Part shown: positions 1 through 28,548 of the stretch, piece by piece
Layout: the number at the start of each line of letters is the position of its first letter
Position numbering within the stretch: the stretch's first letter is position 1
DNA from: Paramoeba atlantica
Lineage: Eukaryota > Protista > Discosea
Direction of reading: 5' to 3'
Length of the DNA: 28,555 bases
Assembly (NCBI GenBank): GCA_977017575.1
Contig: CDRNVI010000218.1
Span: 1 to 28,555 of the forward strand
Notes under the pieces: generated by a model
Told to the model about the DNA's origin: nothing
Database searches by the model: none
The model's input: the letters and a program-made list of their open reading frames with translations, nothing else
Position numbers and translations under genes: made by a program

Positions 1-755
1 CCTAAACCCTAAACCCTAAACCCTAAACCCTAAACCCTAAACCCTAAACCCTAAACCCTAAACCCTAAACCCTAAACCCTAAACCCTAAACCCTAAACCC
101 TAAACCCTAAACCCTAAACCCTAAACCCTAAACCCTAAACCCTAAACCCTAAACCCTAAACCCTAAACCCTAAACCCTAAACCCTAAACCCTAAACCCTA
201 AACCCTAAACCCTAAACCCTAAACCCTAAACCCTAAACCCTAAACCCTAAACCCTAAACCCTAAACCCTAAACCCTAAACCCTAAACCCTAAACCCTAAA
301 CCCTAAACCCTAAACCCTAAACCCTAAACCCTAAACCCTAAACCCTAAACCCTAAACCCTAAACCCTAAACCCTAAACCCTAAACCCTAAACCCTAAACC
401 CTAAACCCTAAACCCTAAACCCTAAACCCTAAACCCTAAACCCTAAACCCTAAACCCTAAACCCTAAACCCTAAACCCTAAACCCTAAACCCTAAACCCT
501 AAACCCTAAACCCTAAACCCTAAACCCTAAACCCTAAACCCTAAACCCTAAACCCTAAACCCTAAACCCTAAACCCTAAACCCTAAACCCTAAACCCTAA
601 ACCCTAAACCCTAAACCCTAAACCCTAAACCCTAAACCCTAAACCCTAAACCCTAAACCCTAAACCCTAAACCCTAAACCCTAAACCCTAAACCCTAAAC
701 CCTAAACCCTAAACCCTAAACCCTAAAACCTAAACCCTAAACCCTAAACCCTAAA
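1..755. repeat. Telomeric array (CCCTAAA)n / (TTTAGGG)n, ~108 units
   Basis: Uninterrupted 7-mer from base 1 to 755, C-rich strand on + as expected for a left chromosome end. One variant unit, ACCTAAA, at 728-734. Confidence 0.99.
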
Positions 756-10045: not shown

Positions 10046-13000
10046 TTAATTTTCTTTTTTTGTTTGAGCTGGTTTTCTAGTTAGTCCCTAAATCAAAAAA
10101 ACAAAAAGTGAGATTCCATTTCTTTCCCACACAATATTATTATTTTAAAAATGAAAAAAATTGAAACAAAAAAAATGAAAAAAAATCAAACCTTTAATTG
10201 AATGATTAGTTCAACAATGCTTTCATCTTTTGCAACATCAAGTACTGTTTGTCCATTCTAAAAACAAGAAAAGAAAAGAAGTTCAAAAAAAAAAAGCTCA
10301 CTTTTCCAATAACCCCACAAATAAAAAAAATAGCAAAATAAAGAAATAAAGAAGAAAAAAAAAACATCAAAAAAAAAAAGAAAAAAAAACTTTGTTTTGA
10401 ATATTAACATTGGCACCATACCCAATCAAAATCTGTACAATTTCTTCAAAACCATTAGAAGCAGCTATGTGAAGGGGGGTCCAACCATTCTAAAATATTA
10501 AAAAAGAAGTGTTAAAAAAGAGAAAAAAAATAAAACAATTATAAAACCCATTAATTCCCCTCTCTATCACAGCAATATAAAAAAAGAGAATAGATTTTTA
10601 AAAAAGAGAAAGAAAATGAAAACTTTATCTTGATGACATATGTCAGACCCATGTTCAATAAGAATTTTTACAACTTCTTCAAAATCTTTGGAAGCAGCTG
10701 CATGAAGAGGGCTCTGACCAATCTGAACATAAAAAGAAGTTTAAAAAAGAAAAAAACATATATCATACATAATATCAGAGAATAACCAACACAGATTAGA
10801 AACACCAAAAAAAGAAAAAAGAAAAAGAAACAATATCAACAAAAAGAACCTTATTTCCAAGATCAACATTTGGTTTTCCTTTTTCCAATAAAATTTGAAT
10901 AATTTGTTCATGTCCATTATGAGCAGCAATATAAAGAGGAGTTACTCCTTTCTTTTTACATTAAAAAAAAAAAAAATAGAAAAATGAGAAAGTGAAAAAA
11001 AATGAGAAAATGAAAAAGAAAACACAATCAACAAAATAACACCTTAGTTACAAGATCAACATTTGCTCCACCTTTTTCCAATAAAATTTGAACAATTTGT
11101 TCATATCCTTCTTGAGCAGCAATAAAAAGAGGAGTTGCTCCATTCTTTTTACATTAAAAAAAAAAATAGAAAAGTGAAAAAGTGAAAAAAAAAGAAAAAG
11201 AAAAAGAAAAAGAAAAAGAAAACAATCAACAAAATAACCTTATTTGCAAGATCAACATTTGGTTCTCCTTTTTCCAATAAAATTTGAACAATTTGTTCAT
11301 GTCCTTTAAAAGTAGCAACAAAAAGAGGAGTTGCTCCATTCTTTACATTAAAAAAAAAATAGAAAAATGAAAAAGTGAAAAAAAAAAAAAGAAACAATCA
11401 ACAAAAAAGAACTTGGTTTGCAAGATCAACATTTGCTCCACCTTTTTCCAATAAAATTTGAACAATTTGTTCATGTCCTTTTTGAGCAGCAATATAAAGA
11501 GGGGTTACTCCTTTCTTTACATTAAAAAAAAAAAATAGAAAAATGAGAAAGTGAAAAAAATGAGAAAATGAAAAAGAAAAAAAAACACAATCAACAAAAT
11601 AACACCTTAGTTACAAGATCAACATTTGCTCCTCCTTTTTCCAATAAAATTTGAACAATTTGTTCATATCCTTTTTGAGCAGCAATAAAAAGAGGAGTTA
11701 CTCCATTCTTTACATTAAAAAAAAATCGAAAAGTGAAAAGTGAAAAAAAAAGAAAAAGAAAAAGAAAACAATCAACAAAAGAACTTGGTTTGCAAGATCA
11801 ACATTTGCTCCACCTTTTTCCAATAAAATTTGAACAATTTGTTCATGTCCATCCAAAGCAGCAATATAAAGAGGAGTTGCTCCATTCTTTACATTCAAAA
11901 AAATAGAAAAATGAAAAACTAAAAAAAAAAAAAAAGAAAAAGAAAAAGAAACAATCAACAAAATAACCTTACTTGGAAGATCAACATTTGCTCTTCCTTT
12001 TTCCAATAAAATTTGAACAATTTGTTCATGTCCTTCTTGAGTAGCCATAAAAAGAGGAGTTACTCCATCCTTTACATTAAAAAAATAGAAAAATGAGAAA
12101 CTAAAAAAAAAAAAAGAAGAAAAAGAAAAAGAAAAAGAAACAATCAACAAAATAACCTGATCTGCAAGATCAACATTTGCTCCTCCTTTTTCCAATAAAA
12201 TTTGAACAACTTGTTCATGTCCTTCTTGAGCAGCAATAAAAAGAGGAGTTGCCCCATTCTTTTTACATTAAAAAAAAATAGAAAAATGAGAAAGTGAAAA
12301 ATAAGGAAAATGAGAAAAAGAAAAAGAAAAAGAAAAAGAAACAATCAACAAAATAACCTGATCTGCAAGATCAACATTTGGTTTTCCTTTTTCCAATAAA
12401 ATTTGAACAACTTGTTCATGTCCTTCTTGAGCAGCCATAAAAAGAGGAGTTGCTCCATACTTTACATTAAAAAAAAATAGAAAAATGAGAAACTGAAAAA
12501 AAAAGAAAAAGAAAAAGAAACAATCAACAAAATAACCTTACTTGGAAGATCAACATTTGCTCTTCCTTTATCCAATAAAATTTGAACAACTTGTTTATGT
12601 CCATTTTGAGCAGCAATAAAAAGAGGAGTTGCTCCATTCTACATTAAAAAAAAAATAGAAAAATGAGAAACTGAAAAAAAAAAAAAGAAAAAGAAAACAA
12701 TCAACAAAAGAACTTGGTTTGCAAGATCAACATTTGCTCCACCTTTTTCCAATAAAATTTGAACAATTTGTTTATGTCCATTTTGAGCAGCAATGTAAAG
12801 AGGAGTTGCCCTATCCTTGACCAAAAAAAATTGAAAAAATGAAAAACTGAAAATGAAAGAGAAAAAGAAACAATCAACAAATAACCTTGTTTGCAAAATC
12901 AACACTTGGTTTTCCTTTATCCAATAAAATTTCAACAATTTGTTCATATCCATTTTGAGCAGCAAAAAAAAGAGGAGTTCTTCCATACTTTAGTTGCAAA

Positions 13001-14169
13001 AAAAAATCGAAAAATGAGAGAAAGTGAAAAAAAAAAAAAAAAGAAAAAAAAAAAATCAAATTCAAATTATCATCATAATATCATAATATCATAAAAGAGA
13101 AGAAACCATATCTGCAAGATCAACATTTGGTTTTCCTTTTTCCAATAAAATTTGAACAATTTGTTCATATCCTTCTTGAACAGCAAATTGAAGAGGAGTT
13201 GTTTCATGGAACTAAATAAATTTTAAAAGATAAAGTGTTTTGTTCAAAAAAAAAAAAAGAGAAAAAGAACCAAAAATGAATTTCAAAAAAGAAACAAAAA
13301 AGAAACAAAAATTGTTTCTATTGAAATTTTAAAAAAAAATGAAAAAAACTTGTTCAACAGCATTGATATTAGCTCCTTGATGTAATAACAACTCAATCTT
13401 CTTTCCATCTCCTTTGAAAGAACCACAGTGGAGATCTGTTATTCCAAACTGTTTTTGTTTTTTGTTTTTTGTTTTTTGTTTTTTGTTTTTTGTTTTTTGT
13501 TTTTTGTTTGAAAAAAAAAGTTAAAATTGTGCTCCAATTTCCACCCCTCTCTCTCTCTCCCAAAAAAGTTGAAAAACATAATATCCATTTTTTTAAAAAA
13601 AGAAAAGAAAAAAATAAAAAGAACATTGGGGTATTCATGTTTTTCCACCATCTCAAAAAGTATCCCAATTTGAATCCAATTGTGATCCACAAAAGCAATT
13701 TTGAATAATTCCTTTTGTTTTTCAAAAATATAATTAAAAAAGATTAATTTAATATTAAATCAAAATAAAATGTTGTTTCATTGAATCAAGACATAGACAA
13801 AAAGAGAAAGAAGAAGAAAGAAAACAAAGAAATAAACAGTCAGAAAAAAGAAGCAGAAAAAAGAAGCAGAAAAAAATGATTGACACAAACCTCAAATGAT
13901 TTTTCTTTCAATTCTTTTCTCATTTTCTCTTCTTCTTCTTCTTTTCTCTTCTTCTCTTCTTCTTCAATTCTCAATCTCACTGCTTCAAGTTCTTCATTTT
14001 CCACTTTCGGTCTTTTAATCACTCCCTTTCTTTGTTTTTCTCTCCCTTTCTCTTCTTCTTCTTCTTTTCTCTTCCTCTTCCTCTTCCTCTCTTCGTCTCT
14101 TCTCTTCTCAGGACTCTCTCTTTCTCTCACCACCTCCTCTTCCATCATATTTCTCTCATTCGAATTCAT
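10046..14169 (-). CDS. Ankyrin-repeat protein, 20 exons, ~699 aa, ~16.5 ANK repeats, one per exon
   Basis: Exons: 14169-13891, 13711-13625, 13448-13350, 13211-13107, 12987-12886, 12815-12714, 12638-12537, 12459-12358, 12258-12157, 12069-11968, 11886-11785, 11707-11606, 11514-11413, 11340-11239, 11144-11043, 10951-10850, 10722-10624, 10489-10391, 10257-10192, 10087-10046. All introns are GT-AG and phase 0, and the spliced frame is open. Repeat consensus xGxTPLxxAAQxGHEQIVQILLEKGxxNVDLxxx. The terminal exon is the least certain. Confidence 0.88.
10850..12987 (-). repeat. Tandem array of 12 ANK exon+intron cassettes (102-nt exons, ~170-205-bp period)
   Basis: Twelve 102-nt exons. Introns share GTT(A/C)TTTTGTTGATTG at the 5' end and mostly T-run-AATGTAAAG at the 3' end. 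Confidence 0.93.
13451..13510. repeat. (TTTTTTG)n microsatellite in ankyrin intron 2
   Basis: Direct reading of the sequence. Confidence 0.85.
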
Positions 14170-14971: not shown

Positions 14972-16456
14972 TCAATCTTGTTGATGCGAAAATAGGGACG
15001 CTTCTCCTCCTTGTAAATAATTCTGAGTTGGTGCTGGGGGATCATTTTGTTGTTGGTGATGGGAGTGGGGGTGGTGGAGGTGGTGGTGAGATGAGTATTG
15101 GGGGGGGACGTGGTGGTGATGTGGTGGCAGTGGTGGTTCTTTTTCTTGGAGTGGTAACAACAACCCACCACCCCTTGGCCAAGGTTTTAGAGCGTTTTTG
15201 GAGGTGATGGTGGTGGTGGTGGGTGGGTGGTTGAGTGGTTGAAACCGCTTTGTGCTGCTGCTGAAGAGGAGGTTGTTTGGTGAGGGAGTGGAGAGAGGGA
15301 TGGGAGGGAGGGTAATAATGGAAGAAAGAGAGGGGAGATGATGATGATGATGCTTTTGTTGTTGTTGTTCTGATTGTTGATGGGATGGTTTTGGTGGTGG
15401 TAGTCGTGGTGATGAATCAAAAATTGGTCCTCTGCTGCTGCTGATGGATTTAAAAGGAAGAATAATATTGGGGTGATGATTTCCTTCTTTTGAAGGGAGG
15501 ACGGAGGGTAGAGAAGAAGAAATTTGTTGTTGTAGGGGAGGTAAGAGAGGAGTGGCGGCAGTGGTGGTGATTGTGGCGGCAGTGACAGCAGCAGTGGAGG
15601 AAGTAGCACTCCTTTTTTGTTGTTGTTGTTGCTGTGAGGAAACAAAAGAAGAAAAAGAAGAAGAACCAGAAAAATGTTGTTGTTCTTGCATATTGTCATG
15701 TTGATCCACAGAATAATCATCAGAATGACCTTCTCCTATGGATTGTTGTGATTGTTGTTGTTGTGTTGCAACACATTGTTGTTGTTGTTGGAATGAAGTT
15801 GTTGTTGGAATTATTGATGAGGTTCTTGTCACCAACTCGCTCTCACCAATCTGCTGAAATCGAGAGTTTTCAACAACAACAGGGTGAGGAGAAGAAGGAT
15901 AATGATGATGAAAACATTCTTCAGAAGAGATTGGGGTCATCTTTTCGAAGAACCGCTGCTGCTGCTGCCTTTGAAAAATTCTTGGTGGTGTTGGTGATGG
16001 CATTAATATTTCTTGAGGACTCATCATCATCAAGTCCTCTTCCTCTTCCTCTTCTTGATGAATTTGTTGTCTCTTCTTCTGTTGCTGATGATGATGTTGA
16101 GTAGTTGGTGATGTTGGAGGAGAAGGAAGAGGAAGATAATGTTCACAGAAGAAAACTTTTGATGCTTGAGGAGGGGGTTGAGAGTGGCAATAGAGCCTGG
16201 CATAGTCTTCATTCCGCAAGGCTCGAACACGACAAAAATTCTTTATCTTCTTTTCAAAATCTTCTGGAGAACAGGAAGAATACTGATACAATTTTGGGGA
16301 CTTTGAGTTGGAGATTATTGTCAAGGAAACTTGGCACCCACAGAGAATCGAGATTTCCATTGCTTTCTTGATTAGACCACTCTTTCTTTTCGAAAACGTA
16401 TTTTGTTGGAATCGCCTATCTGAAATTTTCTTGATTGGTAGTTTCTTTCTTCCCAT
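14972..16456 (-). CDS. MADS-box transcription factor, MEF2/type II-like, 494 aa
   Basis: N-terminus MGRKKLPIKKISDRRFQQNTFSKRKSGLIKKAMEISILCGCQVSLTII...KLYQYSS, followed by a Q/H/P/S-rich low-complexity region. Single open frame. Confidence 0.92.
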   Translation of the reverse strand: MGRKKLPIKKISDRRFQQNTFSKRKSGLIKKAMEISILCGCQVSLTIISNSKSPKLYQYSSCSPEDFEKKIKNFCRVRALRNEDYARLYCHSQPPPQASKVFFCEHYLPLPSPPTSPTTQHHHQQQKKRQQIHQEEEEEEDLMMMSPQEILMPSPTPPRIFQRQQQQRFFEKMTPISSEECFHHHYPSSPHPVVVENSRFQQIGESELVTRTSSIIPTTTSFQQQQQCVATQQQQSQQSIGEGHSDDYSVDQHDNMQEQQHFSGSSSFSSFVSSQQQQQQKRSATSSTAAVTAATITTTAATPLLPPLQQQISSSLPSVLPSKEGNHHPNIILPFKSISSSRGPIFDSSPRLPPPKPSHQQSEQQQQKHHHHHLPSLSSIITLPPIPLSTPSPNNLLFSSSTKRFQPLNHPPTTTTITSKNALKPWPRGGGLLLPLQEKEPPLPPHHHHVPPQYSSHHHLHHPHSHHQQQNDPPAPTQNYLQGGEASLFSHQQD

Positions 16457-20211: not shown

Positions 20212-23200
20212 TCATCCAAAATTTTTGTAACAAAACAGCCGCAAAGTCCCATCTGTTGATGAAGAAAAAACAACTGACATTTTTTGATTTCCCCCAACTG
20301 CCCGACTAGGAACAGCCAAACTGCTTACATTCCCATCATGCACATCTTCTTCGCTCAATAGAGGGTGCAAAAGAGGAGAACGGGTTTCAATCTCCCATCC
20401 AATCACATTCCCTGTTGCAGCTGTCCCTCCCCAAATCTCATTGGGTCCAACCTGAACAAGGCAACTGAGAAAGGCATCTGAAGGGACTTCAACTTGATCA
20501 ACAAGAACGAGCTGTTGATGATCACCACTATCTATGGATCGGAAGATTAAGATTTTTTCTCCATCATAAGCCCAGATCTCTGGCCCCTTTTTAGCAGTTT
20601 GAGAGGGAAGAGGGAGAAAATCCTCCTCCTCCTTTTCCTCTTCCTGTTTTTCTCTAATCCCTCCTCTGTTTCCAACCACCCAATTCCCATTCCACACAGA
20701 AGTCAGACACCGAATGTAAGAAGAGCCACGATCTTTCTCTTGACACCACCCAACACCACCCATCATTTTGTCACTTCCACCTTGGATCTGGATCATACCC
20801 ACAGCATTACCAACTGCCAGACAGAGAGTACTTTTTCCTATAGACACCATTCCACTCCTGGCAGTGTTCTGAAACCGACCTTCAATCCCTGACTGGTCCA
20901 GTTGCAACACTCTCTTTGTCTCAATTCGTGATGTCCGATGCAACCCATGTTCATCTTCAACCGTAATAAGAGTGAACTCAACAACTTGAAAAGCATTTGT
21001 AAAGCACACACTATGTCCCACTGCTTCCAATCCCAAAAACCCTAAACCCTTCTTTGAGCCAGCCTCATCTCTACCATCCTCACCAATGCTGCTGCTATTT
21101 TCAGGTTGTTTCACACCAAGACAAAGGAGAGAAAGATCAAATAACAGCATTCTGGAAAATTGTTCCAAGGCACTCAACCACTGAGAAAGAGAGGGTGACC
21201 CTCTCATGTTCTCTTCAGCTTTGGCAACAGCAAATTTGAAAGTTTTGTTTTGTTCAGGGCACTGAATTTGAATGGTTGGTCTTGGGGTTGAGAGGAAGGA
21301 TGTGACAACTGTGTTTTTGTTAATCAAAATAGAATCTTCTTCTGTTCCAAAATATTGGTGCTTAAAGATACGAAGTCGACCTGTATCAAGACTCACCCAC
21401 ATATCTTCACTCCATAAACTCACTTTCCTCAACCAACCCTTGATGTTGAAGTGCTCAATTGCATCCTCACAATTCAAAGGTGCATCTTTCCAAACTCGGA
21501 GCGTCCCACACATTGAACTTGTCCAAACATGACCCCCAAATGACTGGTAGACCATTGCTCTGACTTCTTTTTTATGTGTGTCTTTTTCGTTACATAAAAT
21601 CAGTTTTGGGTTTCCTCCAATTGCCTTCTTCACCTCAATCACACCGACATACCCATTCCAAAATCCAATCCAAAGCCAATCAAGACCTGCAAAGAGAACC
21701 CTCTTCACTTTCCACTTTTCCTTCACAGACATCATTTCTGACAATCGCAGCGTGGCCACAGAGAGAGAATGGTGAGAATGCCTTGAAGGATGATGAGCAT
21801 CCGCCGCTGTTACATCAATCTCTTTCCTCAGTTGATCCAAAACCCCGACCTGATTCAAAACCTTATGGAACAAGGGGGATTCACCTTGAATCATCTCAAA
21901 TAGAGACTCACAAACTTGGAGGGCAGTTGGACGGCGAGAAGGTTGATGATCCCAGCAAGAGTTCATCAAGTCTAGATACTTTTTCAACAGCTCAGGATTG
22001 TTTTCATTTTCATGCTCAAGGACAGAGCGAGGAATTGAAGGACGCCCCTTTTTGCGAATAAATCCTTTCAACACTTCCATCAACTCAACCTCCAAATCAA
22101 AAGAGTAGGGATAACGACGCACTAAAATCTCCCATAACATGATTCCAATTGCGTGAATGTCAATCTTTTCGGTGAATTCTTGCCCCTTCAACACTTCAGG
22201 TGCTGCCCAAGTTGCGGTCACACATTCAGTTTTGGAATTTTTTCCTCCAACAAGAGAAGAAGCACCAACAAGTTTCACAGACCACCCAAAATCACCAACC
22301 TTCGCCAATGGCTCTCTCAAGGTCTGTTCAGTTATGGGAAATTGAATCAGAGAACGAGTGAGAAAGACATTGGGAGTTTTAAGATCACGGTGAATGATAG
22401 GGGGATTCAGAGAATGGAGATAATGAATGCCCAGAGCAATGTCAAAAGCAATTTTGAGGCGAAGAACCCAAGGGAGGGGAGCATATATTTCGGTGGTCTC
22501 ACGAATGAGATCTTCAACCTTCTTTGAAGTCTCTTTCAAATTCTCAAAGACCCGTTTTTCTTCTTCAGAACCCTCAAAGTTTCCTTCATATCCTCTTTCA
22601 ATCCCAATCTTGAGAGAGTCTCTCAAGGCATTGATTTGCTCCCCATGGCTCCCCCCTGCTATACCCAACCATTTGTCAAAGTATTGGTTGAGTTTTTTGA
22701 AGGCACCATCACATAAATGAAGAAGAGGAGGAAGGGGTGCAGGAGCAGGGAAAACACTTGGTTTGACAAAGTGGAGATTCAATTGACTTCGATAACTCCC
22801 AACTGATTTGATCACACTGTCAATAAGAACCAAAAGATTTAATCCCATGAAATTGATTTGCCCATAGAGGTCTCCTCCACCAACTAATTCCATTACCATT
22901 GCATGGTTATGATGAAATTCATTGAGTGAACCAGAAAGAGGATGAGTGATCCCCACTAACCTGACAATATTGGGATGAACAAGCCCTGTCATTGTGTACA
23001 CTTCCAATAGAAAGTCTTTTTGCAGTCCTTCTTCAGTTGGTGGTTTCTTCTCATCACTTCCAATCATCTGGCAAGAGTCTTGAGCCAGTTTTACATGTTT
23101 TGGCTCAAGAACTTTTGCTGCATATGCAAAGTGGGTTGATTCTCTTTCCTCTCTTTCAATCAGAGAGGAAAGAGAAGGTGAGGGTGGAGGCAAATGTGAA

Positions 23201-26200
23201 GGTGAAGATGGGGAAGGAGAGGGGGAAGGGGAAGGGGAAGGAGAGGGGGAAGGAGAGGGGGTAGGAGAGATTGATTCAGTCACATTTTCTTTTAAATACT
23301 CTAGGATTGGAACAGGAGTATGGTTTCTCTTCCTCTTACCAAGATGCAATGTTTGTCTACAATTTTGACAGAGAAATGATTCATCTTCTTCACATTGATC
23401 GCAAAAAAACTTGACTTCTTGTCTTTCACAATACTCACACAGAGAGGGAACTGAAGGAGGGAGTATTGAGCAAGGTGGGTCTGGGAAGGAAAGAGGAGGA
23501 GATGGTGAAGATATTGAAGGATGAGGGGAAGCAAGAAGAGAAGGAGGAGAAGAGGAAGATAGTTTCCTCTCACCGGAACTTAATTTTTGAAAATTGATTG
23601 ATGAAGAACACAACAGGACTTTTCCAAAAGACCCTTGGCCAAGTTCTTTCTCAATCTCTAAATCCTCCCAACTGACAAGAGAAAGAGTAGAAGCCTCTTG
23701 AATGAGAAGATCAGGAACAAGATATTGTAATGCAACATTATGGCTCTTGTTCTGACAGAGGGCAGTGACTTTCCTTTGAGCAAGGATTTTGTACAAATAA
23801 CTAAATTTATATTGACATGGAAAACAACTCATCCCTCCACCTTCTCCATAATATGCCACTTCCACATCATAATCCATATGATAAAACTCTTCCAACATAT
23901 TCTCAAGAGATCTCATTACCTCCTTCATCCACCATCCTGCCACCTCACTTGACACCCCTTCCAACTTAAGATTCAGTTTGTCTCCTCGTTTTTTTTTCAC
24001 AAGACAATAACACTCCACTGCTTTTTTTGACAACCCATCTGCTGCAGGATAAATAGCTACTGCACAACCTTGTTGCCAACACTCAATCACTTCACCAATC
24101 TTCATCAACTGCACAATCACCATTGGCATCACAGCAACAGGAACAGAAGCTTGATTCTTCATCTTGAAAGTCCGATCCAGGACCACATGATGATGATGTT
24201 GTCCTCCAATCCGAAACTCAAACTCACTCTCAATTCTGTGATTATGCTGAGGCTCATTTTCTTTTAAGAGACAGGGAACAAAGTATTTTTTTCGTTGTTG
24301 CTTTTGGTTGGGAGATCGAAGAGGAAACATGATATGAAGTTGCATCAACAGATTAATCATGTCTTCATGGTATCGCTTGGGAAAATCTTCTTCTTTACGC
24401 CAAAGGTGCAAGGTGAGAGTGTCATGGTCAATCACCCCCCCAGAAGACTGAGCAAAGGAGTGTTTGGTTGTGATAAGAGTTGCAAGTAGACGAGAGATCC
24501 ATTGGGGATTCAAAACGACCGCCATTTCAGTAGAAGCAGGACCCTCCTCTTTGGAAGAAGAGAGAGTTAACATTCTCCTTGGGCGAACAAGGTAGATGTA
24601 TCCGAGAGTATCTAAGTCTTCTAAAAATTCCATACATCTTTCTTCATCTTCTAATGCTTTGATACCTTTCTTGATTCCTTCAAATTGGATCACTTGATGA
24701 ACAAGAGAAATTTTTACGATTGGGCCCTGTTTTAAAGTTTCCAAAGCAACTCGAATCACTTCAAGAGGAGCAGGTGCATCAAAGGCCACTTCGTCACTCA
24801 CTTTCAGCAATACATCCCTCAATGCTTTCGCTCCTTCATCCATTACTTTTCGGTTAAAGAATGACTTCTTGACCCACTGCAGCATCACTGCCTGAGGATA
24901 GATCTTCTCTTCGCCATACCGAGCAATCAAGGATCGATGGAGGTGTTTGTGAGCAGCTTCTGCTTCATTGGGTTTCAACCTGTCCCCATTTGTTGTGATC
25001 AAAAGAATCCGAACCCTTTCTGTACGAGATAAAACAGACTCAATCCAGAAATGAAGTTCCCTCAGAGCATCCTCAGGAGCATCATTTACACGACAGACCA
25101 CAGTATAAATACAAAAATCACGGAGAAACAATTGGTGACTGATTCGATAAATCTTCTGTCCACCAAAATCCCAAGTTTCAAGAATGGTCCCATCTTTCAA
25201 CACAACATCCCCTAACTCAACACCGTCAGTCGAAAGAGGGATGTTCTCCATTTGTTGCCCATCATCTCTCAGTCTTCGAATCGTTGTTGTTTTGCCAACT
25301 GCTGGCCCACCCATCACCATCAATCGCAATGCTTTCATCTTCACCATCCCACCTTCCAACTTTGCCTTACAATACTCAATGATATTTTTTGGTGATTCCC
25401 CAGCTTTGATCTTATCAAGTTTCCTCCAATTTTCGCTTGTCATAAATTCGATTTGTTTGATTGCTTGAGGAGACAAGTACGCAAGGCCAACGGGGAGGCT
25501 GGTGACATCTTTTTGGTGAATAACTCTGACATGAGTGAGAAAAGGACCAAGTAGCGTCCAATCTATGCTGTCCAACTTCTCATCATTGATTTCAAGGGAA
25601 GGGTTGGCAAGTTCGAGAACTCCCGTTTCAATTGAACTGAAAAGAAGTTGTTTTAAAGAATAAAAATTCCCTTCCAATTGGGAAAACATTTGAGGAGAAT
25701 GGAGATAAGATCGAGCAAACTCTCTTGTTATTCTCCCTGATGACCGCGTCTTTTTCAAGGAAAGAAAAATATCGGTCAAAAAGAGAAAGGAAAGGAGAAA
25801 GTGAGGAAAGAGAGAAACACACACCTTCGAGGGCATTGACCCAGCTGCCAAAAGTATTGAAACGACTCGATTTCTCCCTTCGATTTGTTGATCGTTTTCT
25901 GGTTTCATCTCCAAAGCACACGCAAGTTCAGTTTGATTACCAAGCTTGTCTTGATCAAGTTTGGCGAACTGTGATTTGAGCAAATGTTCTAGAATTTTAC
26001 TTTGCCATCGATATGCTGCGTAGTGTATCATTGACTTTCTCTGAGAAAGGGGGAGGTGAGAAAGAAAAAGACTAAAAGACTAAAAGAGAAAAGAGAGAAG
26101 AAAAAAAAAAACCATGTAATCGAGTTTAACAATGTCAGAATCATATCTTAAGAGAAGGAGAACAATCTCGACTCGATCTTCTGATTCTTCCTCAATATCA

Positions 26201-28548
26201 CAAGCAAGATGTGATAAAGTATTTGCGTCCTATCACATCCTCTCCATTAGTAATTACTCCTTTCTTTCTTCTCTCTCTCTCTTCTCTCTCATCTCTCATC
26301 TCTCATCTCTCATCTCTCTTCTCTTCTTATGAAAACAAACAAAAAAATTATTTCTTCTTGATTTTCTCCTTTTGTTTTCTTATTTTTCTTTTTTTTTCTT
26401 TGTCTTTTGTTTTTGAATTGTTGTGTTGGGATGGTATTTTTTCTTTGACAAAAATTTTTCAATTGAAAACCTCTGGAGTGAGTACAATGTCCTTCTCCAA
26501 TTGTGGGTGAGAACGACAAAAAGGATTGTTACCAACACTGTCAATAAAAATTAATAAAAAAAAAAAAGAATAAAAAAAAAAGAAAAATTCAAAAAAAAAA
26601 AAAAGAAAGAGAGAAAAGGAGAGAGGAAAAAAGTGAGAAAGGAAAAAATCTAAATCTAAAAGAAATTTAAATATTTGAAGAGAAATAAAAATCCAAAATA
26701 AATATATTTATTTATTTAGAGAGAGAAAGAGAGAGAAATAGAAATAAAACTTGAAAATAAGAAAAAAAAATACAAAATACAAAATACAAAATACAAAAAA
26801 AAAAATATAAAAATTTATCTTCACAAAAAAGAAGAAAAGAGAAGAAGAAGAGAAAAAAAGAGAGAAAAAAAGAATGAAAAAAGAGAAAAAAAGAAAAAAG
26901 AGACAAAAACACAATTCAGAAATAAAGAGAGAAAACAAAATGAAAGCAAAACTGAAGTGTTTGAAGTGTTGCATTTGTTGAGAGGGACTTACCAATCTCT
27001 CTCGCTCCTTCATCTCCAATTTTATTGTTATCAAGGCTGTGTGTGTTGGAAAAAGAAAAGGAGAAAAAGAGAGGAGGAAGAGAAAAGAGAAGAGGGAAAA
27101 GAGGAGAGAAAGATAAGAAGAAGGAGAGAGGGAAAGAAAGAAGAGAGAAGAGAGAGAGAGAGAGAGAAGAGAAGAAAAGAGAAGAAAAGAGAGAGAAAAG
27201 AAGGAAAAAGAAGAAAAGAGAAGAAAGTGAGAGAAAGAAAAAAAGTGAGAAAGAAAACTAAAAATCCAAAATAAATATATTTATTTAGAGAGAGAGAAAA
27301 AGAGAAAGAGAGAGAAATAAAAATCCAAAATAAATATATTTATTTAGAGAGAGAGAGAAAGAGAGAGAAATAAAAATAAAACTTGAAAATATGAAAAAAA
27401 AATACAAAATCCAAAATCCAAAATATAAAATATAAAAATTTATCTTCACAAAAAAGAAGAAAAGAGAAGAAGAAAAGAAGAGAGAAAAAGAATGAGAAAA
27501 GAGAAAAAAAGAAAAAAGAGACAAAAACACAATTCAGAAATAAAGAGAGAAAACAAAATGAAAGCAAAACTGAAGTGTTTGAAGTGTTGCATTTGTTGAG
27601 AGGGACTTACCAATCTCTCTCGCTCCTTCATCTCCAATTTTATTGCCACCAAGGCTGTGTGTGTTGGAAAAAGAAAAGGAGAAAAAGAGAGGAGGAAGAG
27701 AAAAGAGAAGAGGGAAAGAGGAGAAAAAGATAAGAAGAAGGAGAGAGGGAAAGAAAGAAGAGAGAAGAGAGAGAGAAGAAAGAGAAGAAGAAAGAGAAGA
27801 AGAAGAAAAGAGAAGAAAAGAGAGAGAAAAGAAAAAAAAAGGGGAAAGAGGGAAAGGGAGAAAAGAAGGAAAAAGAAGAAAGTGAGAGAAAGAAAAAAAG
27901 TGAGAAAGAAAAATAAAAATCCAAAATAAATATGTTTATTTAGATAGAGAGAGAGAAAGAGAAAGAAATAAAAATAAACCTTGAAAATATGAAAAAAAAA
28001 TACAAAATACAAAAATATTATTTATCTTCACAAAAAAAGAAGAAAAGAGAAGAAGAAAAGAAGAGAGAAAAAGAATGAGAAAAGAGAAAAAAAGAAAAAA
28101 GAGACAAAAACACAATTCAGAAATAAAGAGAGAAAACAAAATGAAAGCAAAACTGAAGTGTTTGAAGTGTTGCATTTGTTGAGAGGGACTTACCAATCTC
28201 TCTCGCTCCTTCATCTCCAATTTTATTGTAACCAAGGCTGTGTGTGTTGGAAAAAGAAAAGGAGAAAAAGAGAGGAGGAAGAGGAGAAGAGGGAAAGAGG
28301 AGAGAAAGATAAGAAGGAAGGAGAGAGGGAAAGAAAGAAGAGAGAAGAGAGAGAGAAGAAGAGAAGAAAAAAAGAGAAGAAAAGAATGAAAAAAGAGAAA
28401 AAAAGAAAAAAGAGACAAAAACACAATTCAGAAATAAAGAGAGAAAACAAAATGAAAGCAAAACTTAAGTATTTGAAGTGTTGAATTTGTTGAGAGGGAC
28501 TTAGCAATCTCTCTCGCTCCTTCATCTCCAATTTTATTGTTCCAAAGG
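20212..28548 (-). CDS. Roco-family (LRRK-like) GTPase-kinase, 5'-partial, at least 2090 aa: RI-type LRRs-ANK-ROC-COR-TKL kinase(+B-box)-WD40-like propeller(+PH)
   Basis: Exons 28548-28465, 28237-28154, 27654-27571, 27036-26953, 26537-26471, 26229-26113, 26040-25825 and 25749-20212 splice in frame. ROC: GGPAVGKTT, STDG, WDFGGQ. COR: LNPQWI, YFVPCLL. Kinase: GQGSFGKV, AAK, HRDLKTPN, DFG, APE. Confidence 0.9.

Follow-up and report, generated by a model that had tools for sequence, protein, structure and literature searches.

Near-identical leucine-rich-repeat exons that differ mainly at exposed residues in a predicted Roco gene of Paramoeba atlantica

We analyzed a 28,555-nucleotide (nt) stretch of Paramoeba atlantica DNA (NCBI GenBank assembly GCA_977017575.1, contig CDRNVI010000218.1, positions 1 to 28,555; hereafter, the window), one end of which carries four near-identical exons, W1 to W4, that are predicted to belong to a Roco gene, each encoding a single leucine-rich repeat (LRR). 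We propose that these exon cassettes supply the variable sensor part of LRR-Ank-Roc-COR-kinase proteins encoded by a multi-copy gene family, in which units made of an exon and its adjoining intron evolve in concert while diversifying selection acts on the binding face, and we put the probability of this explanation at roughly 80%. The cassettes are listed below, where xx stands for the two residues so marked in the LRR motif LxLxxN.

28465..28548, minus strand: LRR cassette W1, xx = WN; scaffold variants A20, S27, and I3, junction AA; boundaries cacacag/C...AA/gt; nhmmer score 90.5 bits
28154..28237, minus strand: LRR cassette W2, xx = GY
27571..27654, minus strand: LRR cassette W3, xx = GG
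26953..27036, minus strand: LRR cassette W4, xx = DN

Each cassette is 84 nt long, consists of 1 nt, 27 codons, and 2 nt (phase 2-2), and encodes one 28-residue LRR of the ribonuclease inhibitor (RI) type. The exon translation reads L-x-x-N-K-I-G-D-E-G-A-R-E-I-G/A-K-S-L-S-T-N-A/S-T-L-Q-T/I-L, with the x of LxL supplied by the codon split at the junction. The complete repeat, LQTLxLxxNxIGDEGAREIxKSLSTNxT, has 28 residues and fits the 28- to 29-residue period of RI-type LRRs (LxxLxLxxN/CxL followed by the helix segment G..GA..L). The exons are preceded by ...ccaacacacacag (ending in ...cacacag) and followed by gttttgctttca..., with AG and GT at the boundaries. The exon coordinates, phases, and codons given in a preliminary description of the window were found to be correct when we re-read them from the sequence.

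Cassettes W2, W3, and W4 differ from one another at exon nt 6, 8, and 9 only, where GGT TAC, GGT GGC, and GAT AAC encode GY, GG, and DN, respectively. As the preliminary description had stated, there are no synonymous differences among these three exons (0 observed). The chance that all 3 variable columns among 84 would land in the two xx codons is about 2e−4. Cassette W1, for which WN "plus a few other changes" had been reported, carries TGG AAC and four further changes (exon nt 45, 65, 78, and 83), and all four are replacements (G>A, A>S, T>I, and H>N at the junction).

Variation among cassettes at exposed and other positions

A protein search with the Roc-COR part of the product led to unnamed proteins of the ENA assembly ERZ24900291. 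The 90% cluster of the closest protein has nine members on five contigs, which we refer to as L001 and L005 through L008. A profile built from the four window exons then recovered 22 more cassettes, bringing the set to 26 from the window and four loci: L001 contributes five of the added cassettes, L008 four, and L007 eight, while L006 has four and, in addition, one distant relic. The AG/C...GT boundaries are common to all 26, and 23 of them are 84 nt long and in phase 2-2. The three exceptions, all in L006, measure 81, 82, and 85 nt owing to insertions or deletions of 1 to 3 nt.

Cassette peptides are 78 to 100% identical to W2. Variation was evaluated in the 23 intact cassettes. With repeat positions numbered L1 x2 x3 L4 x5 L6 x7 x8 N9 x10, the residues are distributed as follows.

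Position 7: 10 different residues
Position 8: 9 different residues
Positions 3, 5, and 10: 5 different residues each
Position 20: dimorphic, G or A
Position 27: nearly dimorphic, S or A, with one T
Most other positions: invariant

Compared codon by codon in this larger set, variation is concentrated at 5 of the 28 positions rather than being spread evenly. The codons that had been singled out as variable, the xx of LxLxxN, are LRR positions 7 and 8 in this numbering, and they remain the most variable ones. The preliminary description had confined hypervariability to these two positions, and that part needs widening, because the larger set adds positions 3, 5, and 10 and the dimorphic positions 20 and 27.

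Selection was gauged by counting methods only (Nei-Gojobori, all-pair averages). Across the whole cassette, the proportion of nonsynonymous differences (pN) is 0.113 and that of synonymous differences (pS) is 0.019 (pN/pS = 5.8 overall), and pN reaches 0.41 at positions 3, 5, 7, 8, and 10 versus 0.043 elsewhere. When distinct variant codons are counted, there are 43 replacement variants versus 3 synonymous ones on 64 versus 20 sites (binomial P = 0.0026). Two of the three synonymous variants fall in one cassette of the decaying L006 array, and the third, CTT>CTC, adjoins a changed codon and resembles a 1-nt deletion compensated by an insertion. Two cassettes have this appearance: L006:7982-8065, in which CTT CAA became CTC ATA, and L007:5667-5750, in which CTT CAA became CTC AAA. 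Each looks like a 1-nt deletion offset by a 1-nt insertion 2 to 3 nt further on, with a single residue altered, at position 2.

Replacement variants are strongly overrepresented at the exposed positions of the xxLxLxx segment (positions 2, 3, 5, 7, and 8), which hold 27 of the 43 (P = 8e−11). The excess does not depend on the window: among the 19 cassettes of ERZ24900291 that had no part in the discovery of the pattern, these positions hold 26 of 42 replacement variants (P = 3e−10), and in L007 alone they hold 13 of 18. The 23 cassettes carry 19 different xx pairs. In the xx codons, nucleotide diversity (π) at the first and second bases is 0.5 to 0.76. At the third base, the first xx codon has T in 20 of 23 cassettes and the second has C in all 23, despite the two- or four-fold degeneracy of many of these codons.

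The fixed third bases bear on the possibility that the xx codons are a mutational hotspot, created by targeted hypermutation or templated micro-conversion, with the excess of replacements as a by-product. Such a process would fit the multi-nucleotide differences packed into 4 to 5 nt (TA -> GG between W2 and W3). It would also fit the identical xx codon pairs found in different loci (GY, WN, and also RY, present in L008 and in the 85-nt L006 relic), as expected of short-patch copying. A hotspot, however, would be blind to codon position and to the protein surface, whereas here synonymous third bases stay fixed next to highly diverse first and second bases, and the other variable codons (3, 5, and 10) are scattered along the exon and yet all encode exposed residues. 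We therefore consider a local mutational process very improbable and attribute the pattern to selection on the encoded residues.

Homogenization of cassettes and their intron ends

The introns that separate the cassettes provide a comparison with noncoding sequence.

28238..28464, minus strand: intron 1, short form, 227 nt; CT-rich, with ends identical to those of the long introns
27655..28153, minus strand: intron 2, 499 nt; homogenized ends and an AT-rich, low-complexity middle about 6% diverged from that of intron 3
27037..27570, minus strand: intron 3, 534 nt
26538..26952, minus strand: intron 4, 415 nt; first 75 nt match the other introns, 3′ end unique

Introns 2 and 3 have no mismatches in their first 75 nt and one in their last 110 nt, while their middles differ at 17 of 295 aligned sites (about 5.8%) and by 72 gap columns. 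This contrast between ends and middles delimits a homogeneous block of about 270 nt centered on the exon, within units (exon plus intron) of 0.3 to 0.6 kb. In the alignment of all four units, the 7 nt upstream of each exon and about 74 nt downstream are likewise identical. Over the exon and the first ~74 nt of the following intron, substitutions among W2 to W4 occur only in the two adjacent xx codons, and the ~110 nt of intron upstream add just one. The identity of W2 to W4 extends beyond the coding sequence and is not a coding effect. The introns between cassettes fall into two size classes (28238-28464 versus 27655-28153 and 27037-27570), and L007 shows both as well, with unit spacings of 316 to 351 versus 528 to 613 nt. 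What sets the long form apart is an additional AT-rich block of about 270 to 300 nt (GTGAAGATAAAT...TTATTTTGGATTTTTATTT), absent from the short form.

Near-identity of this kind could be produced by mis-assembly or over-polishing of a tandem repeat at a contig end. The window terminates 7 nt upstream of W1, as would a contig that broke at a repeat, so that the 5′ end of the gene lies outside it. Moreover, an exact look-up of the window's Roco product, both as the longest open reading frame (ORF) and from the start used by the gene caller in the paralogs, found no match in the public gene collection. A collapsed repeat, however, would not yield unit introns of four different lengths with diverged middles, and polishing would remove the xx differences rather than make them. 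The independent assembly also has the same architecture at four loci, with units that are equally homogeneous. Taken together, these points make an artifact extremely improbable.

The Roco bodies of the five related contigs are 94.8 to 97.6% identical to the window's at the DNA level, which means that ERZ24900291 contains at least five copies, none of which is identical to the window. Compared with the window, the gene bodies have pS of 0.03 to 0.067, pN of 0.008 to 0.023, and pN/pS of 0.28 to 0.40: the Roco gene body is under ordinary purifying selection. L001 shares with the window a downstream ankyrin-array gene and is without the ~5 kb that separate the two genes in the window. This arrangement marks L001 as a paralogous block or a rearranged one, and not simply as an allele. 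In three more distant Roco paralogs (L002, L003, and L004; 68 to 77% nt identity), there is no cassette of the W1-W4 family within the fetched flanks.

A conserved exon with an ATG (MDSNVQRFVDKYNLKGKENW...VTYL), ending in phase 2, lies about 390 nt upstream of the first cassette in L001, L006, L007, and L008. Because this exon and the terminal LRR exon bound the arrays, the arrays are complete, with 4, 4, 5, and 8 cassettes, and the window array has at least 4. These numbers support the earlier suggestion that cassettes can be gained and lost in frame. Their order differs too: WN is upstream of GY in the window and downstream of GY in L001. Relative to the window, L001 and L006 each have one in-frame stop, and the gene caller split or truncated the long Roco ORF in three of the five copies (L001:8682-14140, L006:10001-14275, and L007:7297-12799); the ORF is intact in the window copy and in L005. 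Interrupted copies of this kind suggest that the Roco family undergoes birth-and-death turnover. An orphan cassette of 85 nt, frameshifted, with xx = RY and an L006-type acceptor, is located at L006:21665-21749, about 6 kb downstream of the Roco gene.

Several observations bear on exchange among the units. Over positions +1 to +38 downstream of the exon, π of the intron ends is 0.013. Over the first 84 alignment columns, to which we restricted the p-distances because a 110-nt span is inflated by misaligned low-complexity tails, intron ends differ by 0.022 within loci and 0.034 between loci. Both this divergence and the cassette pS (0.019) are lower than pS of the gene body between copies (about 0.06), and intron-end divergence is also lower than that of the window's intron middles (about 5.8%). 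Arrays carry their own marks: a 2-nt insert after ...TTTCTGAA is present in five of five L001 units and elsewhere in one L008 unit only, and every L006 unit has a shorter CA run before the acceptor and the GTTCTTTTGTTC variant downstream. The scaffold site pairs 16/45 and 45/65 (exon nt), each less than 50 nt apart, show every one of the four possible allele combinations. Finally, W4 and the last L001 cassette have orthologous flanks that are about 95% identical, but their exons differ at 10 of 84 nt, and the scaffold of W4 is exactly that of W2 and W3. Low divergence, array-specific marks, allele combinations, and the W4 scaffold together point to repeated unequal exchange and short-tract conversion within arrays, and some exchange has probably occurred between loci as well. 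The combination of homogenization with focused diversification that had been inferred from the window alone is supported in the larger set: cassette pS of 0.019 and intron-end divergence of 1 to 3% are set against gene-body pS of 0.06 and pN of 0.41 on the exposed face.

An alternative to conversion is constraint. The cassettes would then be old, purifying selection for folding and exon definition would keep the scaffold and the intron ends unchanged, and the xx residues would be old, position-specific, and stable. This explanation agrees with the finding that intron ends and synonymous sites are conserved not only within loci but also between them, and with the distribution of some xx pairs: WN is common to the window and L001, and GY occupies the second cassette in L001 and, if W1 is the first cassette, in the window, with GF in that place in L008. 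Constraint does not, however, account for insertions and deletions that are private to an array and yet present in each of its units (the L001 insert, which follows GAA, and the short CA run of L006), or for the presence of all four allele combinations at such closely spaced scaffold sites. Nor does it account for arrays of 95%-identical paralogs that vary from 4 to 8 cassettes and share only 2 to 3 of 19 xx pairs, and the conserved 75 to 110 nt exceed known splice signals. We regard constraint in place of conversion as unlikely. Nucleotide-level constraint may nevertheless contribute to the conserved flanks, without explaining the array-specific marks or the changes in number.

The Roco gene and its surroundings

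Downstream of the cassettes, the gene continues on the minus strand through the following features, and a telomeric run lies at the opposite end of the window.

26471..26537, minus strand: predicted terminal LRR exon of 67 nt with a degenerate repeat, H-VGNNPFCRSHPQLEKDIVLTPE; entry phase 2, exit phase 0, and frame continuous with W4 and with the next exon
26113..26229, minus strand: ankyrin-like exon, 117 nt, phase 0-0, with predicted splice sites
25825..26040, minus strand: second ankyrin-like exon, RKSMIHYAAYRWQ...; acceptor ctcag/AGA in frame with the long ORF
25750..25824, minus strand: probable 75-nt in-frame intron inside the long ORF, gtgtgt...aaaaag; L005 and L007 have an in-frame stop there
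20212..25749, minus strand: main exon encoding the Roc GTPase, COR-A, a B-box insert, protein kinase, and a C-terminal region without a Pfam match
7..727, plus strand: telomeric (CCCTAAA)n run, which puts the locus in a subtelomere

The frame from W4 to the long ORF of 1939 codons is unbroken across the predicted GT-AG introns, and the stretch VCVSLFPHFLLSFLFLTDIFLSL, encoded by 25750-25824, resembles a translated pyrimidine-rich intron. The assignment of the exons to a Roco gene, made in the preliminary description, is supported by the domains of this ORF. Roc (41.5 bits, Pfam cut-off 27; residues 236 to 348) and COR-A (41.0 bits, cut-off 35.3; residues 502 to 589) follow each other directly, as expected of Roco proteins, and a protein kinase scores 115 bits, also above its Pfam cut-off. 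A B-box (Pfam E = 1.3e−4) lies within the kinase region, and Pfam finds no NACHT, NB-ARC, or WD40 domain in the long ORF. The named sequences matched by the Roc-COR region include animal LRRK1 (E ~1e−6).

The RI type of the repeats, likewise claimed earlier, is recovered even from a single 27-residue cassette exon, whose best match among solved structures is ribonuclease inhibitor (1dfj_I, E = 2.9e−8), followed by designed and ciliary RI-like LRR proteins and NOD2 (5irl). The Pfam family LRR_6 matches single exons with E = 1e−3 to 1e−2, and its score of 19.2 bits against a whole-protein cut-off of 23.4 bits is what would be expected for one repeat. The predicted product is a Roco protein with the architecture RI-type-LRR - Ank - Roc - COR - kinase, and we infer that the cassette exons are spliced as predicted. 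Patterns for the spliced exon-exon junction and for the exon core each had 0 matches in JGI metagenome contigs.

The Roco gene lies about 20 to 28.5 kb from the telomere. Within 28.5 kb of the telomeric run, there are the Roco gene, an ankyrin-cassette gene, and a MADS-box gene. The last is a MEF2-like MADS-box ORF with long Q/H/P/S-rich tails (14972-16456), and the ~5-kb block to which it belongs is missing from the otherwise syntenic L001. The intron that separates the first ankyrin exon from the terminal LRR exon contains a GA-rich simple repeat (26282-26319). On L005 (L005:1-3445, ERZ24900291 ctg1549l), an array of one-repeat ankyrin cassettes, not LRR cassettes, precedes a Roco body on the same strand that is 95.9% identical to the window's. 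This ankyrin array is 79 to 81% identical to the window's ankyrin array at 10797-13207. L005 may represent a swap of sensor domains between near-identical paralogs, although its contig is only 10.5 kb long and a mis-join is possible.

The subtelomeric arrays of Roco genes could also form a contingency system, in which cassettes or patches of the binding face are exchanged between chromosome ends, or skipped in splicing, so that receptor surfaces differ within one clone. We consider this a long shot. If true, it would be a protist counterpart, for an intracellular LRR sensor, of VSG/var-type subtelomeric switching or of VLR assembly, and the L005 ankyrin array on its 96%-identical Roco body would be a second interchangeable sensor module.

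Proposed explanation and comparison with known systems

Under the explanation that we favor, concerted evolution of units combined with diversifying selection on the binding face, the exon scaffold and the intron ends (about 110 nt before the exon and 75 nt after it) would be kept nearly identical by two processes. Unequal crossing-over between units would add and remove cassettes, and short-tract gene conversion within arrays, and probably between loci, would homogenize the exon together with its flanks. The encoded repeats would form an RI-like horseshoe, and positions 3, 5, 7, 8, and 10 would lie on or beside its concave sheet, as is established for LRRs, where the concave face binds ligands. 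Diversifying selection would keep or renew the differences on this face, so that each paralog presents a different binding surface. We hypothesize that the LRR surface binds a variable partner and regulates the output of the Roc GTPase and the kinase, in line with proposals made for other Roco proteins and NLR-like sensors. That the proteins sense non-self or pathogens is plausible, but this is the weakest step of the explanation.

Some observations weigh against the explanation as a whole. The ORFs are interrupted in several paralogs, and part of the cassette sample may derive from decaying genes. One RNA-like run contains just 13% of the sampled words of the big exon. The window stops within the array, a typical place for an assembly to break. 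Nucleotide-level constraint by exon definition, instead of conversion, could be responsible for part of the low divergence at synonymous sites and intron ends. Lastly, GY and WN are common to the window and L001, and some xx states therefore predate the copies and survived homogenization of the scaffold, so that diversification was not necessarily rapid.

We describe an unusually clean example of an evolutionary pattern that is already known elsewhere; the setting, molecular as well as taxonomic, is new, but the phenomenon is not categorically so. The new elements are the RI-type repeat class, the Roc-COR-kinase output, the telomere-adjacent window copy, and the homogenization of intron ends together with the exon. 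Near-identical repeats with a few hypervariable surface positions, changing number, and exchange among paralogs are considered a hallmark of receptors that keep up with varying ligands, and this hallmark has been worked out for fungal NLRs and for brown-algal ROCO and NB-ARC genes. Its presence in what seems to be an unrelated lineage of protists would mean that receptor diversification based on cassettes had arisen independently once more. The arrays also provide a clean natural data set, with an invariant scaffold, defined variable positions, and neutral comparators 100 nt away in the intron ends and middles, from which conversion tract length and the strength of selection can be measured. 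We suggest the family as a tractable candidate for work on what Roco proteins sense in protists, whether free-living or parasitic.

A close parallel is found in the brown alga Ectocarpus. Its ROCO genes have one 24-residue "type I" LRR per 72-nt exon, exon shuffling, inactivated cassettes, and positively selected sites on the concave face (Zambounis et al. 2012, PMC3341825), so that the resemblance to exon-shuffled LRRs drawn in the preliminary description is genuine. Brown-algal LRR-ROCO genes, whose architecture is LRR-ROC-COR, also splice their LRR exons alternatively (Teng et al. 2024, PMC11378527). As in Ectocarpus, whose LRR-ROCO proteins have been proposed as candidate receptors, the Roco genes studied here have frame-neutral exons with one LRR each and belong to a multi-copy family that includes pseudogenes as well as cassettes that are orphaned or inactivated. 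The orphan L006 cassette resembles the "inactivated exons" of Ectocarpus. Cassette number and order likewise differ between paralogs, and counting methods indicate positive selection here at presumed concave-face positions. Unlike in Ectocarpus, the exon has 84 nt and encodes a 28-residue RI-type LRR, downstream of the array come Ank, Roc-COR, a B-box insert, and a kinase, and homogenization is much tighter (exons 0 to 3 nt apart) and includes 75 to 110 nt of each intron end. The window copy adjoins a telomere, and its host is not a brown alga. The window locus is an analogue of the Ectocarpus LRR-ROCO genes and not a member of that gene family.

A second parallel is with the fungal NLRs of high internal conservation (HIC; HET-E/NWD; WD40, ANK, and TPR), whose repeats are 80 to 100% identical, carry about four hypervariable selected positions, and undergo gain, loss, and shuffling, for which unequal crossing-over and ectopic conversion between paralogs have been proposed (PMC13449251). 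With 78 to 100% identity to W2, we count the cassettes among repeats that are at least about 80% identical, and they too have few hypervariable positions and vary in number among the paralogs or copies compared in two assemblies. The L005 ankyrin array on a Roco body recalls the alternative repeat types of fungal NLRs. The fungal repeats, however, are WD40, ANK, or TPR repeats within one exon on NACHT or NB-ARC ATPases, whereas the repeats here are LRRs, one per exon, with co-homogenized intron ends, on a Roc GTPase and kinase. The window locus behaves like the fungal system but does not belong to it.

The repeat itself (28 residues, LxxLxLxxNxIGDxGA...L) is like those of ribonuclease inhibitor and the NLRC3-NOD-type proteins. 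In vertebrates, the LRR exons of RI and NLR genes are modular as well, each encoding a 57-residue A+B pair of repeats (171 nt), but they are not known to be kept near-identical. The genes described here differ from them in having one 28-residue repeat per exon and extreme internal conservation. In placing a protein kinase after Roc-COR and LRR and ankyrin repeats at the N terminus, the predicted protein is like LRRK1, LRRK2, and the Dictyostelium Roco kinases. The N-terminal order in LRRK2 is ARM-ANK-LRR, and the LRRK1/LRRK2 domain order runs ANK-LRR-Roc-COR-kinase-WD40. In contrast to the LRRK proteins, the LRR array here precedes Ank, the LRRs are of the RI type, Pfam finds no WD40, and a B-box lies inside the kinase region; the LRRs of LRRK proteins are not cassette arrays under diversifying selection. 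Finally, as in the lamprey VLRs, the diversity of the binding surface is carried by LRR cassettes, with the variable residues on the concave face. Lamprey VLRs are assembled somatically from flanking cassettes by a conversion-like process linked to cytidine deaminase, whereas the diversity described here is germline diversity between paralogs, and nothing in it indicates somatic rearrangement.

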